In this document: positions 1,499 to 46,121 of the stretch, piece by piece
Position numbering within the stretch: the stretch's first letter is position 1
Layout of the letters: each line of letters starts with the position of its first letter
NCBI GenBank assembly: GCA_946965045.2
Contig: OX337231.1
Span: 3,410,001 to 3,474,000, forward strand
Source of the DNA: Epithemia pelagica
Lineage: Eukaryota > Protista > Bacillariophyta
Direction of reading: 5' to 3'
DNA length: 64,000 nt
Position numbers and translations under genes: made by a program
Notes under the pieces: generated by a model
Database searches by the model: none
Seen by the model: only the letters and a program-made list of their open reading frames with translations
Told to the model about the DNA's origin: nothing

Positions 1499-1516
1499 TC
1501 TCTCTCTCTCTCTCTC
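1499..1516. repeat. (TC)n microsatellite
   Basis: tctctctctctctctctc in the intergenic region just past the stop of the 2OG oxygenase gene. Confidence 0.8.
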
Positions 1517-1563
1517 TTTTCTATACGGCACAACCGACTCCCGGGTCAGGGAACAAAGAAGAA

Positions 1564-3108
1564 TTAGGACCGTTGGACTTGATTCCACTTGTCGTCCAGT
1601 ACTTGTTGCAAGGGAGTGTGCATCATGTCCTGAAGCTGTTGGGTCACACTACTCGTTAAAGGAGGAGTAGAAGTAGTAGAAGAAGGACTGCTCGCGGCCT
1701 GGTTGTGCAAGAGGGAATAATCGTCCAAGACCAAACACCTCCTTGTTGTTCGTGGCACGTCCCGGCAAGAAGGATGCGTGCAAGTCGTTGTTGTCATATC
1801 GGTCGTCGAGTCCTTGTTATTGTTGTCGTTGTTGTTGTGGTGTTGCAGATAGGTGGCCTGCGGTGTGTCGTGAGCCGCCTGTTGGAGTTGGGTTACCACT
1901 TGCGCCAAGGAGTGGTGCGGTGGTGGATAGGCAAAATAAACCAACGAGACACGAGGTTCTTGTGGTTCTTGTTGTGGTTGGGATTGTTGTTGGGGAGAGA
2001 CGACGCGATGGCGGGGAGACGGCCACGACACGTGGAGTGCCGCGTCGTCGTGTTTGTGTTGTGCGTCGTCCGGATGCTGCGGGTCCGTGGTGGTACGGAG
2101 CGTGGGTGCCGCCGCGGCCAACCCCAAGGCCAAACTGGTCAAGTCACTGACATGAACGACAAAGAAAAGTTTGTCCTTTGCATGGATGGTACATGACGGA
2201 GCAATGGGATTCCAGGTACGACAGGCGTGACAGTAGGTTTCCAATCCACCCACATCGTCTTGCCAAACGACAGTCCAGGATCCCCAATCGGAATGCGGAC
2301 TGGACCCCAAGACAACGTTGTCGTCGTCGGCGTCTTTGGGTGGCGGCACGGTGTGATAGAAAAAGGCGCGCAACAAATCCATGCTACAAGAATGGTCCCC
2401 GTGGTCGGTCTGGGTGTCTGGTTGGTGGTGGTCGTTTGGTTCCTCGCACAATAAAACATTGGGAGGCAATTCCAAGGTTTGACGGACCGTGGTGGCAATT
2501 TGATGCAACAATTGAATCCAATCGTACAAGACGAGCGACTCGTGGTCCCAATCGTTGTTGAAATTGCGGTTGTTGTTGTTGTGGTTGGGTTCCACTATCA
2601 GCGTCGTCGACAACGACAGGAATCGCCGCGACACTTCCCACGATTCCTTGGGTTCCACCTGCAAACTCGTGGCCGATCCACTTTCGGCTTGACGGTAGAT
2701 ACCACCGGGAATTTTCGTCCTGAAAGAGTCCGTGTTGTCGTTGTCAGTGTCGTCTTGTGGTCCTGTACTCGTTTTGGCAAAGAGATTCCAGAGCATGGAT
2801 TTCCAGTGGCTGGCATGATCCTGGTTCTTTTTCCACAAGCGTGGGGACAGGGCATGAGGAACCTGTGGGGACGACGACGACGACGGGGAATCGGCCCGAA
2901 CCAGAGCCAATGGATCCAATTGCACCACGGCCCATCCAAAATGGGACAAGATTCGAGCCAATCGAGACGAGTTCTTGTTGTTCTTGTTGTTCATTGTGGT
3001 AGAAGCATAATTGTCGCGAATTCCCAAAGATTCTTGAAACTCGTGCGTGAGATCGATTGTGGCCTCGGCCCTGTCGTGACAACAGGTACACACTCGGCGC
3101 TTTGTCAT
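1564..3108 (-). CDS. 2-oxoglutarate/Fe(II)-dependent dioxygenase (IPNS/2OG-FeII_Oxy family)
   Basis: ORF 1564..3258 (GTG start; first ATG at 3108). Motifs: LLRAFFY, GSSPHSDWGSWTVVWQDDVGGLE (HxD), RHRV (distal His), RVSLVYF (RxS), with low-complexity insertions. Confidence 0.85.
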   Translation of the reverse strand: MTKRRVCTCCHDRAEATIDLTHEFQESLGIRDNYASTTMNNKNNKNSSRLARILSHFGWAVVQLDPLALVRADSPSSSSSPQVPHALSPRLWKKNQDHASHWKSMLWNLFAKTSTGPQDDTDNDNTDSFRTKIPGGIYRQAESGSATSLQVEPKESWEVSRRFLSLSTTLIVEPNHNNNNRNFNNDWDHESLVLYDWIQLLHQIATTVRQTLELPPNVLLCEEPNDHHQPDTQTDHGDHSCSMDLLRAFFYHTVPPPKDADDDNVVLGSSPHSDWGSWTVVWQDDVGGLETYCHACRTWNPIAPSCTIHAKDKLFFVVHVSDLTSLALGLAAAAPTLRTTTDPQHPDDAQHKHDDAALHVSWPSPRHRVVSPQQQSQPQQEPQEPRVSLVYFAYPPPHHSLAQVVTQLQQAAHDTPQATYLQHHNNNDNNNKDSTTDMTTTTCTHPSCRDVPRTTRRCLVLDDYSLLHNQAASSPSSTTSTPPLTSSVTQQLQDMMHTPLQQVLDDKWNQVQRS

Positions 3109-4082
3109 CTTCTTGCTAGTAGTTGTAGTGTCGTTTTTGGGACCTCCCTTGTCCGAACCACTCCACAACAACACAGAAACCCAACCCACCACAACCCGAG
3201 AGAATACAACAACAAGACGAGAACCTCTACGATCGTTCTTGACAGTCAGTGCCCCCACAAAAGATCTCTATTTTGACATCTCTCTTGTTCTGCGTGGGAT
3301 CTTTTCTTGGAGAATGGGTGGGATGGCACTCGGAAGGGAGGCCGACTAGGGTTTTGTGCGATTCACCAAAATTTTACTCTTGAAATCCATTGGGACAATT
3401 GACTGGCGCGGACTCGGCCCTCCCCGAAAGCGACCCAGGGCAATACAGTAGCGAGGGTCGTGCTCGCAAAAAAGTGGGGTCGCCTCGCCCATACACATCG
3501 CACCGAACAAAGCCCCTGCGTCCACCCCACACGAACCAACTCGTGTGGAGAGATAACTCCATATCGTTCGCTCTCTCTATTGTTGTTGTGGCTGTTCCCT
3601 TTTGTTGTGGAGAGGACCCAATCGATAGTGTCTCGTCCAACTCCACGCAACAACAAGCAACACCAGAACAAACGACAGAAAGAGAAAAAAGGAGTGAGAG
3701 GCAGTCTCTTTTGTTGTGTCTTGGTCTTTTGTTTGGACTCGCTCTCGTCGGACGATTTGCCTGCTCTGGGGAGAAGAGGTGCAAGAAAAAAGTCCGCGAA
3801 GCAACACAGACAGTGACTGGAGTTGTGGTGGAACACAAAATCAAGAGACCACTCAACACAACAACCACCATAAAGGGAGGAGAGAGTACAGAGTATCGAG
3901 CAAGAGAGAAATGATTGCAGTGGAAGCGAATCATTACCTGTTGTGAGAGAGATTGGAAAAAAAGCAGTGTTGGAGAGAGGCATCTTCTTGTTGTGGAGAG
4001 TGGGTGATTGGTTCGTCTTGTCCTGTGGATTGGTGGTGTTGCACCTCTGCCAAGAAACGAGACGTCCCTCTGGTTGTGGTCC

Positions 4083-21807: not shown

Positions 21808-22125
21808 GACAATGAGACGACACCACTGCGAGAACAGACCCGGAGTTCGACATGATCGGATTCAGACGCGGGGTATCTTGTATCTGCGACCACTATATGA
21901 GCGCAACTCTCTTTCGGTAGACCTATATTTTGAAGCACAATACATACTCCTCTAGTGAAATTGCCTTAAAAGCTTGTTCCGTCTCGGATTGCACTACTAA
22001 TCGATTATCTACGTAAGCTAGCCTTTCTCGTCCTAGGTCTCGTCAATGTCCCAAAAGGCTAGGTCGTTAGTCCAAACATCATTCCACCAAGATTTAGGGG
22101 AGGCGACATTCTCGTAGGTCAAAAT

Positions 22126-23359
22126 TCAGTTCTGGTAGTCACCATCATGACTCATCTCATCCTCATCCACATCTTGGACATCGGAGTCATCAGAATCATT
22201 GTAAGGGGCGATGGTCCGTGCAGTGCCTTGGTTTGCACGCTTTCGTTCCGGTTGCTTGGCGGCCTTGAGGAGTATCGAGAAAACAAACATCTTGGCAGCA
22301 CCCCTGTGCTCCTTGGTGAAGTCTTTGTCCTTCGAAGTGAAGGCTTGTAGTTCGTATTGCATATCTTCCTTCACACACTTGAAAGGTAACTTGATTTTCT
22401 GCTTCGCTACAAACTTTGGTTTGCCACCCTCATACGTTGCATGTTCCTGTTTGGCCCGGTCACAGAGTTGCTTGAACTCTGTGACCCTATGGTCCTCTTG
22501 CCCAAGATCAGGATGCGCCGCCAACAGTCGACCTTTCTGGAAGAAATAGCTTGGCACAACAGAATCGACCTGGACTGCCATGCCATCATCCACCAGCCCC
22601 GGAGTGTAGGTCTTCGTGGACCCTCCTGGGACACACATGTCCACAGAACAGAACAGAGTATTAGAACTCTCAAACTTAGATGCACAGTAGGGATATGAAG
22701 CCGCTACTACCAGTTCCTTGAAAGCAGCACCACCACCACCCTTCTTAGGTGTCTTGGCCGGGGTGAGGCCCATCTTTTTGAACGCTTGAACCGCCTCCTC
22801 CATGCTGAAGCTGTTGATTTCGCTGTTGTTGTCTTCTACCTCTTCTTCTGCTGCACCAGATTCAACTGACGCCTCTTCAAGATCAATGGAGATGTCCTCC
22901 TCCTCCTCAGCCCCACTGTAGTCTCCGTCTTCAACTTCCTCGGCTTCGTCCTCGACAAGGTTGTTAACCTCTAGGCGATTTTGCTCTTCAGCAGCAACAG
23001 CTGATTCTATAACAAAAGAAAGAAAGTAGTTAGAATCATGAAGCAACTTTCAACAATGGACACTTGCACTTACGTCGTTTACCAGCTCGGGCTTTCCGTG
23101 CCCCTGTCAAAGTCTGGTTAATATTCCAGGCTCTGGCTTTTTCGCGAAAGAGAGGGCCAAAATTCTTGTATGCCTTGTGGACGTCGGGCTTGCAGCGCTC
23201 GGGAAAGTGAGTGAGAAGAACTTTCTTCGCAGTGTTAACGGACGTGTCGTTGCTTGAAATTCCACCGTGGCTTGGACCCTTGCGAAAGAGTTCAGCGAGC
23301 TTGGCGTCGTCTTTCTTACTCCAAGCAGGTACTCTGTCGGTCGGTAGCACCACTTTCAT
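22126..23359 (-). CDS. Transposon accessory protein (Harbinger ORF2-like, putative Myb/SANT-like N-terminus), two exons, ~388 aa
   Basis: Exons 23359-23074 and 23006-22126 (intron GTAAGT...TTATAG, 67 nt; alternative donor GTAAAC at 23082 has the same phase). N-terminal WSKKDDAKLAELFRK...FREKARAW, acidic linker, then a globular C-terminal domain. Lies wholly inside the TIRs. Confidence 0.8.
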
Positions 23360-23539
23360 TTCATTGAGACAAAATTTATGATGGCAAGAGATTGCGAGAC
23401 TTCGACGTGAAGTTCTTCTTCTGAGCACTCCGTTGTGTTTGTGTGACTGTCATGCTTGCAATCAGAAACGAGTTGACTTTCCCTCTCGCAGTCACACGGC
23501 ATTGCAAGCAGGCGCGGTAACTGAAAAAACATAATTGGT

Positions 23540-23820
23540 CCGTTCAACGGAAAGCCCAAATTCCGAGATCTGGCCCGAATTCCGAGATCGACCCGAATTC
23601 CGAGATCTGGCCCGAATTCCGAGATCGACCCGAATTCCGACCAAAGTATACTTTATTTCAGAGTAAAAACCCGAATTCCGAGATCTGGCCCGAATTCCGA
23701 GATCGACCCGAATTCCGAGATCTGGCCCGAATTCCGAGATCGACCCGAATTCCGAGATCGGGACCAGATTTCTGACATCAGGACCAAAATTAATTATGGA
23801 CACGTGCCATCCAACTGACC
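23540..23820. promoter_or_regulatory. Putative bidirectional control module of the transposon
   Basis: Lies between the divergent ORF2 and transposase starts. Palindrome CCGTTCAACGG (23540-23550), CACGTG (23801-23806) and CAACTG (23812-23817) flank the array, and all are retained in the MITE copy. Function is inferred. Confidence 0.45.
23556..23762 (+). repeat. Internal two-block tandem array of 19-bp (A) and 18-bp (B) units
   Basis: A=CCGAATTCCGAGATCTGGC, B=CCGAATTCCGAGATCGAC. Order A'-B-A-B-partial, an AT-rich spacer of ~29 bp, then A-B-A-B-C; 10 core copies. Confidence 0.97.
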
Positions 23821-24133
23821 GGCCCGCTTTCTTACGCTTAATCGGTTGTTTGTCTAATCTGTAATGGACATGTACGTGCTAAGTCAATATGACAGGTCTA
23901 GAGAGTGGTCTTATATTGGTCACGAATGAATAGTCATCTGCCTATGTAACACTATCAACGAAATCAACATGGATCCGTTCAAATTTTTCGGTGGGGAACG
24001 GTCCCTAATCCACAGTTGTAGTCCCTAGTAGAAGTAGAAAGGAGAAATCGATGCTCGCGTGAATCGTGAAAGGTACGATTTCTACCTAAAAGTCGTGTCT
24101 CGTCCTCAAGATTTCTCACAAAAACTGTCCATC

Positions 24134-25132
24134 ATGGCTCCGTCGAATGCCGAGGGGAACAAGCGGCAACGCTGGTCTGCCCCAAACCCTGAAGACTTTT
24201 TGTACCATGCCCGGTTGATCTGGAGCAACGATTCCCTTTTGTTCCACCGTAAAAAGGGGACCGTCCAAAGTGAGGAGCGGATGTTTCGGCAGTATTTTGG
24301 GTGTGGCATTCTTGTTTGCTTGAATTTGTGGTGCGCTCTTGTGGAGTCCGACTCGGTGCCTGTGTCAGGAACAATGTCCCATCTTCTTTGGACACTCATG
24401 TTCCTTCGGGTGTATGCAAAGGAACGAGTATTGTGCACTCTGGCTGGTGGTGTCAACAGGAACACGTTCTCGAAATGGACATGGCTCTTCATTGATGCCA
24501 TTGTCCGCCTTGAAAGTCAAGTGGTAAGTCTCCCTACAGTCGTTTTTGTTTGTTTTTGTTTCATTGTCTAACATTCCAAGAATGCTTTACAGATAGTGTG
24601 GGAAAACCGCTATAAGCTAGACAAAGGGAATGACTGCCTCATTAGTGTTGATGGGACAGACTTTCGGGTGGCTGAGAACGGACGCAAGTTCTACAGCCAC
24701 AAATTCAAGAAAAGTGCCCTCAGATATGAAATTGGGCTGTGTATTTTGACAGGGGATGTCGTGTGGTTGAATGGGCCCTACGTTGCTGGCAGCCACAACG
24801 ACATCACAATTTTCCGTGACTGTCTTCTGTCACACCTCGACCCCAATGAGAGGGTCGAGGCTGATGATGGCTACCGTGGCGAACATCCTGAGTTTGTCAA
24901 GTGCCCAGCTGGATTCAGCAATCCAGCAGACAATCTAAAAATGCAACAACGAGTCCGAAGCCGCCAAGAAACCATCAACAAGCGCTTCAAGGACTGGGGT
25001 TGTCTGCGTCAAACATGGCGGCATGACATTGCGTCCCATGGCCGTGCTTTCCGTGTCATCCTCATCGTCTCACAACTTGCAATCAACAACGGAGAGAAAC
25101 TCTTCTCCGTTGACTACACAGATCCATCCTAG
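24134..25132 (+). CDS. DDE transposase, DDE_Tnp_4/Harbinger-like, two exons, ~309 aa
   Basis: Exons 24134-24523 and 24593-25132 (intron GTAAGT...TTACAG). Catalytic motifs ISVDGTDF (D), FYSHKFKKSALRYEIG, GPYVAGSHNDITIFR, VEADDGYRG (D), RSRQETINKRFK (E). The N-terminal helix-turn-helix-like region reads HLLWTLMFLRVY...FSKWTW. Confidence 0.92.
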
Positions 25133-25472
25133 TCGTCCACAGATCCATAGTCCATAGTCGTAACAGATACTAGTGAAATTAGCCATTGTCGAAATTCGGG
25201 TTTTAGCTATGGACTGTCAACACTATCTGCTTCAAGGCAATGATTAACTAGGATAGGTTGTGTTATGACTACTAGCCAGACTTCTCGTTCGGACTCGACA
25301 GGTTATTGGCCGATCTCTTGGCAGCCTCTCGTCCGAGACGGAACCAGCTTTTAAGGCAATTTCAGTTCTGAAGCAAGGATGAGAGGATGTCTACCCTAGG
25401 ATCGTCTACGATCAGCTTTGCCTCGTTGTTTCGAATCATTCGATCGTTCTTGGGCATCATGCTGATCTCTTC

Positions 25473-44441: not shown

Positions 44442-44867
44442 GAATGGAGTGAATGCGATATGCGATGCTTTAGTCCTGGCTTCAAGCCCTTCAATGAAAA
44501 TTATAATTTAGATATGTCGTCCAACGCTGTCTCTGGTTCTCAAAATCACCGATAACCAGCAGATAACCAACAAGTCAGAAGGTTGACAGATCTGTGAGAT
44601 GACAAGGACTTGCTTCTTGCACCAGACAGGACACAGGACATGCGGATTGTCTGCATGAGTGCGGATGCGGAAGTTATAGCGATGGTGATCTTTGTCGCTG
44701 TATCGAGGGATGGCTAGAGTGTCATCGAGTACCGAATAGTACTGGCTCTGATTCAGTTCTTTTCAATCCCATATGATACAACGCAGCGATCTTGAAAAAA
44801 AAGATTGATAACACGTGCACGTGCACTCAACGCGACGCTTTTTTCCCTCCTTTTGTCGTCGCACATA

Positions 44868-45656
44868 GAAATTGCCTTAAAAGCTGGTTCCGTCTCGGAC
44901 GAGAGGCTGCCAAGAGATTTGCCAATGACCTGTCGAGTCCGGACAAGAAGTCAGACAAAAGCCATAGCACAACCTATCCTAGTTAATCATTCCTTGAAGT
45001 AGATCGTGTTCCCATTCCATAGCTAAAACCCCGAATTTCGGTAATGGCTAATAGTACTCGTTTGTAGCTATCTAGTCATTAGAGAGCCGAGTTGACCTGT
45101 CAAACAGGATATTGCAAGCAGGCATGGCAACTTGAAAACCGTTCAACGGAAAGACCAAATTCCGAGATCTGGCCCGAATTCCGAGATCTGGCCCGAATTC
45201 CGAGATCTGGCCCGAATTCCGAGATCGACCCGAATTCCGAGATCGACCCGAATTCCGACAAAAGTATTCTTTATTATAGAGTAAAAACCCGAATTCCGAG
45301 ATCTGGCCCGAATTCCGAGATCGACCCGAATTCCGAGATCTGGCCCGAATTCCGAGATCGACCCGAATTCCGAGATCGGGACCAGATTTCCGACATCAGG
45401 ACCAAAATTAATTAAAGACACGTGCCATCCAACTGACCGGCGCACTTTCTTACGCCTAATCGGTTGTAGATATACGCTGAGACCTGAATTCTGTCCTACG
45501 AGAACACGTTGCCTCCCCGAAATCTTGGATGATGTTTGGACGAACGACCTAGCCTTTTGGGACATTGACGCGACCTCTCTAGGACGAGAAAGGCTAGCTT
45601 GTTGATAATCTATCTGTAGTGCAATCCGAGACGGAACAAGCTTTTAAGGCAATTTC
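44868..45656. mobile_element. Non-autonomous (MITE-like) derivative of the Harbinger-like element, 789 bp
   Basis: Begins GAAATTGCCTTAAAAGCTGGTTCCGTCTCGGA and ends TCCGAGACGGAACAAGCTTTTAAGGCAATTTC, the same TIRs as 21957-25363 in opposite orientation. TSD ATA at 44865-44867 and 45657-45659. About 180 bp of each subterminal region is recognisably homologous; no coding capacity. Confidence 0.95.
45155..45380 (+). repeat. Second copy of the 18/19-bp tandem array, inside the MITE
   Basis: Same A and B units; order A'-A-A-B-B-partial, spacer, A-B-A-B-C; 11 core copies. Confidence 0.97.
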
Positions 45657-46121
45657 ATAGCTATGCCCCGATACCAGAACGGTGCTAACTACTGCTACTC
45701 GGAGCTCGGAGTAGCTCACAACATCACAACATCCTGTAAAGGAAGAAAGAGAAGCCACCCCTTCCAAGTTTTCGCACGTTCTCTATATACTTATCACGGT
45801 TCAATATATTCGAAAGAGGGTTTCGATTGATGGAATTAATGATCAAAGATGGCTCTATTCGCTCCACGTACCGATGGAGAAAAAAGTTGCAAAGCCGAAC
45901 CGCGATACCATTCTTGTTAATCCATAAGATTGTAGAATGAGAGTCATGGAAAAAGTCCTCTTGACCAACAACGATGGTTGGGTATACTGTTCCATCCCTT
46001 AGTGGAACCAGAAAATTGTTTGATTTTCCAAAGTGATTTACTCGTGACAACATCTCCTGTGCACGTCTCGAACCCATTGTCCTTGATGACTTCCACTGTG
46101 TTTGGATCATTGTATCATTTG

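Follow-up and report, generated by a model that had tools for sequence, protein, structure and literature searches.

A 789-bp element in the diatom Epithemia pelagica raises the question of why a transposon derivative that has lost both of its genes should keep, besides its two ends, a segment from the middle of its parent, and keep it inverted. The usual explanation of MITEs is that they are deletion products reduced to their ends, and the basis of their success as derivatives is poorly understood. The window analysed here is a stretch of 64,000 nucleotides (GCA_946965045.2, contig OX337231.1, positions 3,410,001 to 3,474,000), to which positions given without a locus or contig name refer; the genome searched comprised 60.5 Mb in 23 contigs. 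We found that every amplified derivative detected in this clade of transposons keeps a discrete internal array, in one orientation or the other.

The parent layout is seen in a 3,407-bp element of the same window (Table 1), whose ORF2 and transposase genes are transcribed divergently and contain one spliceosomal GT-AG intron each; the element is eukaryotic. In domain and relative searches run exon by exon, exon 2 of the transposase matched PF01609 (E = 3e-7). Many of 609 transposase relatives carry PF13359 (DDE_Tnp_4), and the closest named ones are diatom proteins, for example from Fistulifera solaris, including a protein of that species named DDE Tnp4 domain protein. Family A, to which this element belongs, thus encodes a DDE transposase of the IS5/DDE_Tnp_4 type. 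The target-site duplication (TSD) of PIF/Harbinger elements is 3 bp long and classically TWA. Among families A, B, D and E, more than 25 copies have a 3-bp TSD, and its sequence varies beyond TWA (ATT, AAT, ACC, ATA, GAC and GTC were seen). The transposase evidence and these duplications together place the parent in the PIF/Harbinger superfamily. Between its genes lies a central module with short flanks, in which a 28-nt spacer separates two half-arrays of 18/19-bp units. An imperfect inverted repeat brackets the module, at 23515-23522 (GAGTTGAC) and 23818-23825 (CAACTGAC), but it is so short that by itself it has no significance.

Blastn resolves the 789-bp element into three matches to 21957-25363: the reverse complement of the right end, the central module on the plus strand and the reverse complement of the left end. 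This agrees with the initial annotation, according to which the termini are reversed relative to the parent while the interior reads on the parent's strand, so that both genes were lost and the intergenic module was kept, inverted relative to the ends. The two arms are ~180 bp each, the first 51 nt of the right-end arm show no differences from the parent, and the 32-nt terminal inverted repeats (TIRs) are 97-100% identical to those of autonomous family-A elements. Since the subterminal regions are unlike each other beyond the TIR, left and right ends can be told apart without ambiguity. The blastn match of the module runs from 45111 to 45467 against parent 23501-23849 (plus strand, 87.2% with gaps), and weaker homology extends back to parent ~23471. 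About 58 nt separates the right arm from this match; we rejected the idea that these nucleotides are foreign DNA, as they are a diverged homologue of the flank of the parent module. No convincing microhomology was found at the junctions, and a 23-nt stretch shared, in inverted orientation, by the array and the right subterminal motif coincides with none of them. Short, non-coding, with matching TIRs and TSDs and present at several sites, the element is a Tourist-like MITE, which we call MITE-A. It does not follow the pattern of a simple internal deletion, because its third segment comes from 1.5 kb inside the parent and is inverted. The flanking ATA duplication had been taken to mean that the element transposed in its flipped form; ATA is indeed present on both sides, and eight further copies are flanked by other 3-bp duplications.

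Table 1. Features of the family-A parent and of the MITE-A copy in the window, with the MITE families and convergent copies found elsewhere
Feature	Position	Strand or module orientation	Remarks
Autonomous PIF/Harbinger element, family A (parent), 3,407 bp	21957-25363	+	TSD AGT
TIRs of parent, 32 nt	21957-21988 and 25332-25363		
ORF2, 388 aa	22126-23359	-	exons 23359-23074 and 23006-22129, then stop codon
Central module between divergent genes	23471-23849	+	
Half-array 1, parent module	23555-23641		
Spacer, 28 nt, parent module	23642-23669		
Half-array 2 and degenerate units, parent module	23670-23791		
Transposase, 309 aa	24134-25132	+	exons 24134-24523 and 24593-25129, then stop codon
Single array-unit-like motif, right subterminal region	25182-25211	-	best off-array match to the array in the element
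TSD ATA, left copy	44865-44867	.	ATA repeated at 45657-45659
MITE-A copy, Tourist-type, 789 bp	44868-45656	.	one of 9 genomic copies
Right-end (transposase-side) arm	44868-45052	-	88.8% to parent 25363-25178 (25178-25363), blastn
TIR within right-end arm	44868-44899		32 nt
Single array-unit-like motif inside right-end arm	~45026-45042		
Diverged upstream flank of module	45089-45138	+	homologous to parent ~23471-23532; 66% over all columns, indels
Module core	45139-45467	+	MITE consensus 97.7% to parent 23533-23849, 309 nt, gapless
Short palindrome, then half-array 1	within module core; half-array 1 to ~45259	+	
Spacer between half-arrays	45260-45287	+	
Half-array 2 and degenerate units	45288 to ~45417	+	
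CACGTG-containing flank	after half-array 2, within 45139-45467	+	part of module core
Junction filler, 12 nt	45468-45479	.	without parent counterpart
Left-end (ORF2-side) arm	45480-45656	-	86.9% to parent 22133-21957, blastn
TIR within left-end arm	45625-45656		
MITE-A family		flipped	both arms and module; 9 copies
MITE-B family		native	C-like left arm, B positions 1436-2135, B right arm; at least 12 loci, some segmental duplicates
MITE-D family, 920-990 bp		native	both arms and array; at least 3 intact
MITE-E family		flipped	E 1-158, reverse complement of E 1554-2020, E 3411-3592; 5 copies
ERZ25042306 MITE, 777 bp	L083 5727-6503	native	both arms and array; one seen; duplication AAT
Convergent autonomous copies	L083:3993-8345 and L084:3981-7618 (ENA ERZ25042306)		transposase, array, ORF2 on opposite strand

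An exact scan of the whole genome for the family-A TIR gave 36 matches, all of them within 10 autonomous and nine MITE-A copies, and no other family-A derivative was present in the assembly. All 10 autonomous copies (93-99.7% identical, nine of them at 97.4-99.7%) have the layout of the parent, so that an autonomous subfamily with a flipped interior, the source that would make MITE-A a simple deletion product, was not found. The tally of genomic copies that the initial annotation had called for came to nine MITE-A copies out of nine with the module, each time flipped. They are 97.2% identical in pairwise comparison outside gaps and differ in flanks and duplications, and one carries an expanded array. 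That all nine are flipped points to a single flipped founder, followed by at least eight transpositions. Two copies of the family have themselves served as targets: a 4.65-kb element (L041:837-5485, G000 C1), which has short TIRs of its own and no match to Harbinger proteins, splits one MITE-A copy near position 130, and one autonomous copy carries, at the very start of its array, a 1,363-bp element (L038:1802-3164, G000 C2) whose TIRs are perfect over at least 70 nt and which has no similarity to the Harbinger families.

The array is not a peculiarity of family A. The genome contains at least 135 related transposase loci, and four sister families, in which exon 2 of the transposase is 51-71% identical to that of the parent, have divergent genes, as in family A. 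All five families have a two-part central array with 10-16 copies of an 18-20-bp unit; in the sister families, two runs of units surround a spacer of ~30-40 nt, and the sequence of the unit is specific to each family. The same architecture was found in elements of Fistulifera solaris and in two metagenomic diatom contigs. The clade is thus marked by a central array with units of 18-20 bp, in most cases divided into two parts, which was observed in nine families from several diatom sources. In eight of the nine families the module sits between divergently transcribed genes. The exception is a further family in assembly ERZ25042306, of which two copies have convergent genes and an array between both 3' ends. 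The array is therefore central in either gene orientation, which speaks against a mere promoter. Circular permutation was rejected as the source of the convergent family, because its TIRs and those of the divergent families are homologous. An exact-match scan of the metagenome contigs for the family-A TIR gave no matches.

Several other arrangements were seen among these relatives. Families B (L043:1123-4700) and C (L045:1107-4693) are mosaics, with 82-93% DNA identity in the transposase arm and 34-70% across the ORF2 arm plus intergenic region (the ORF2 arm by itself giving 47-69%), which suggests inter-family recombination. Seven tandem repeats at ~8.2 kb spacing (G000 C11:1423607-1472946) contain one solitary D/E-like TIR each. 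The distant family F (3,144 bp) is very active, its copies numbering at least 32 and being 96-100% identical. In place of a direct array, the centre contains a palindrome (L051:3042-3264, G000 C3) with 109-nt arms (78% complementary) built of a repeated short motif. Among the best 40 candidates scored, family F has two single-copy, one-deletion derivatives without a centre (C8:3387000-3388371 and C17:19918-22339), the only centre-less derivatives seen anywhere.

We then have five MITE families, and the array is kept in all five, flipped in two and native in three, with independent founders. Each family goes back to a single founder, so the evidence for retention rests on five events. Three MITE-B loci (L059, L060 and L070; G000 C11:701174, C17:311200 and C5:1308610) share flanks and are segmental duplicates, not independent insertions, and the MITE of ERZ25042306 lies within the array of the autonomous element that is its partner. 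Many non-autonomous copies lacking the module would have spoken against the role proposed for it in the initial annotation; genome scans with the A, B/C and D/E TIRs, in which the best-scoring candidates were evaluated and which more diverged module-less MITEs could escape, found no short TIR pair without it.

Identity between MITEs and autonomous elements is unevenly distributed. The MITE-A consensus matches autonomous family A at 94-100% in the terminal 50 nt, at ~85% in the subterminal regions and at only 66%, with indels, in the upstream flank of the module, and then at 97.7% over the 309 gapless nucleotides of the core. The layout of 4+5 units is found in seven of nine autonomous and six of eight MITE-A copies with countable units. 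The homologous but diverged upstream flank implies that the module was already in the MITE-A lineage when the arms began to diverge, and a core at 97.7% beside this old flank implies that the core was held constant, by constraint or by conversion. If the autonomous lineage alone had been constrained, ~16 mismatches would be expected in the MITE-A core; seven are seen, a modest excess of conservation (rough p = 0.01 by our own arithmetic). MITE-B is 93.6% identical to B in the core, 80% in the right and 54% in the left subterminal region. Constraint on the autonomous lineage alone can explain module conservation in MITE-B and MITE-E, and MITE-E is uninformative on this point.

What might bind the array? 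The cores of the units are dyad-symmetric in families A, D and E. In family A, the best matches to the array elsewhere in the element are the right TIR and the subterminal motif at 25182-25211 (p ~0.01), and in family C the best such match is the right TIR (p < 0.001). No significant resemblance was found in families B, D, E, F and G, and the cross-family controls were not clean; we therefore rejected a resemblance of units to TIRs as a general rule and treat it as a weak lead. Comparison of families B and C, in which the transposases are 88-90% identical, the ORF2 proteins 64-66% identical and the array units different, hints that the array tracks ORF2. The second ORF of PIF/Harbinger elements encodes a Myb/SANT or MADF-like DNA-binding protein. 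In the diatom elements ORF2 is conserved in eight families, and its N-terminal domain is modelled as three helices (pLDDT 76). This domain had no Pfam match, with no recognisable Myb or MADF domain, and a Foldseek comparison with the PDB gave nothing at E <= 0.001; a wide structural search returned homeodomains, with weak matches (Z 5-5.7) below the confidence level of the tool.

From these sequence comparisons we infer that a protein binds the array, which protein this is and that the array acts as an enhancer, and we give a probability of about one half to the reading that the central array is a cluster of binding sites for an element-encoded protein and acts in cis as an orientation-independent enhancer of transposition. 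The DNA-binding protein would more likely be the product of ORF2, with the transposase as the alternative. Once bound to the putative sites, it could raise the local concentration of the transposition machinery and help to pair both ends, and the module would enhance transposition in cis whichever way it faces. Since every MITE family found keeps the array, it is probably an aid to transposition and not a mere remnant; in autonomous copies, these sites probably have a second role in regulating both genes. A fuller version, which we offer tentatively and at somewhat under even odds, is that diatom PIF/Harbinger elements have a dedicated two-part central enhancer made of ORF2 sites, needed in cis, indifferent to orientation and co-evolving with ORF2, such that each family and its MITEs would be mobilized by their own proteins alone. 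The proposal in the initial annotation, that the module was retained as a cis element working either way round, gains strong comparative support from the conservation of the array in nine families, its retention in five of five MITE families, its occurrence in both orientations, its standing as the best-conserved internal segment and the failure of the TIR scans to reveal short pairs without it; its functional half is an interpretation that we share in conditional form.

Two other functional accounts deserve weighing against an enhancer bound by an element protein. The module might be the bidirectional promoter or operator of both genes, with no role in transposition, and have been kept in MITEs by accident or through a bias in how deletions form. 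Its place between divergent genes in eight of nine families fits such a promoter, as do CACGTG and the conserved spacer, which a core promoter might have, and the conservation seen in B and E could stem from the autonomous lineage only. However, MITEs have no genes to express and yet carry the array in five of five families, the MITE-A core keeps both its 97.7% identity and its unit count, the array of the convergent family lies between 3' ends, and the units differ between families, which is unexpected for sites of host transcription factors; we regard a mere promoter relic as unlikely. The module might also act in cis through host factors or chromatin, for instance a nucleosome-free, unmethylated or transcribed state, and not through proteins of the element. 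This would predict orientation independence, retention in MITEs and conservation equally well, and it draws on the facts that DNA binding by ORF2 is only predicted and that units resemble TIRs weakly in most families. Against it, the units change from one sister family to the next while their period and layout are constant, a pattern that better fits a fast-evolving element protein co-evolving with its sites, and the dyad symmetry of the units suggests a dedicated dimeric binder. We thus consider action through host factors alone improbable.

The history of the locus could also account for part of the pattern. The element 21957-25363 had been named as the source copy, but the MITE-A arms differ by 11-15% from all 10 autonomous copies, and the two deletions plus an inversion that had been proposed are more than is needed: one inversion and one deletion suffice. 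If the parent is written as abcde, where a and e are the left and right arms, b is ORF2, c the module and d the transposase, MITE-A corresponds to ac'e, the prime marking inversion. An inversion of b-c turns abcde into ac'b'de, from which deletion of the contiguous b'-d yields MITE-A; inverting c-d serves equally. MITE-A may therefore be a one-deletion product of a lost autonomous relative in tandem order (end, module, ORF2, transposase, end), in which ORF2 and module were inverted. Such a relative would be a plausible autonomous element, and descent from it would make the inversion uninformative on function while being compatible with any of the functional readings. In its favour, inversion of element positions 178-1893 (or 1515-3184) and one contiguous deletion give the exact order of the MITE, the direct parent, judging from the divergence of the arms, is absent from the assembly, and the convergent family shows the gene order of the clade to be labile. 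No tandem-order autonomous relative was found in this genome, the second assembly or six other diatom contigs: the 10 family-A copies, the copy in the second assembly and all nine families are divergent or convergent. MITE-E, moreover, was flipped independently, and native-orientation MITEs require two deletions regardless; a tandem parent is for us a minority possibility, doubtful though not negligible. The step from the flip to deliberate retention, as taken in the initial annotation, is weakened by this simple route, and the stronger case comes from the sister MITEs with a native module, which need two deletions, not one. It could further be argued that the high identity of the module between MITEs and autonomous elements reflects recent capture or repeated gene conversion and no constraint. 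The high-identity tract of MITE-A has sharp edges, and MITE-B is a mosaic, its C-like left arm being joined to a B-like module and right arm, with B and C mosaics themselves. We rejected recent capture of the whole module by MITE-A, as the upstream flank (66%, with indels) is homologous and old, placing the module there before the arms diverged; conversion would have to be confined to the core across dispersed copies. Exchange without constraint is accordingly the account to which we give least credence.

An enhancer bound by an element protein, in contrast to these accounts of its history, would bear on how such elements coexist. Were the array a family-specific recruitment site, it would explain how related Harbinger families live in one genome without cross-mobilization, and it could supply parts for diatom transposon tools. 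The natural forward, reversed and absent variants of the module make the cis needs of cut-and-paste elements beyond the TIRs directly testable. In the literature searched we found no description of a retained central array in diatoms.

Related arrangements are known from other systems. Ac/Ds and En/Spm carry multiple short protein-binding motifs within the terminal few hundred bases, and in mariner and piggyBac ill-defined internal stretches beyond the TIRs raise mobilization; none of these is known to have a discrete central array 1.5 kb from either end. The rice elements Ping and Pong, with mPing, share with the diatom elements a PF13359-type DDE transposase, a second ORF of the required type, short TIRs, 3-bp TSDs and MITEs mobilized in trans. 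The diatom elements differ from rice PIF/Harbinger elements in having TSDs beyond TWA and an ORF2 without a recognisable Myb or MADF Pfam domain. mPing is not known to retain more of Ping than its two arms, whereas the diatom MITEs, in all families found, carry a discrete central tandem array that is conserved across families. In yeast assays, transposition was shown to be promoted or inhibited by internal regions of mPing and mPong (PMC9921582). The bivalve and insect MITEs of the DTC84 or pearl type are reported to have central tandem repeats between inverted-repeat arms and an array length that varies by copy, together with an AA duplication and an adjoining microsatellite, and the abstract of that paper names no autonomous partner (PMC3879986). 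On the characters given there, MITE-A, with a 3-bp duplication and no microsatellite, falls outside the pearl/DTC84 class, and the diatom MITE array can be traced, with its exact unit layout, to the centre of identified autonomous elements.

A further likeness is to bacteriophage Mu, to which the initial annotation had pointed and which we keep as an analogy and no more. The internal activation sequence of Mu lies far from the ends, between divergent transcription units, is bound by Mu's own proteins and aids assembly of the end complex. The diatom module is likewise a far-internal site in the regulatory region between divergent genes, with protein binding that is only predicted. Mu is bacterial and its transposase is unrelated; its enhancer is orientation-sensitive on supercoiled substrates, whereas the diatom module has been amplified in both orientations. 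If diatom PIF/Harbinger elements do have a dedicated central enhancer, this Mu sequence would have a counterpart in eukaryotes, and there would be a new rule for which deletion derivatives can become MITEs.
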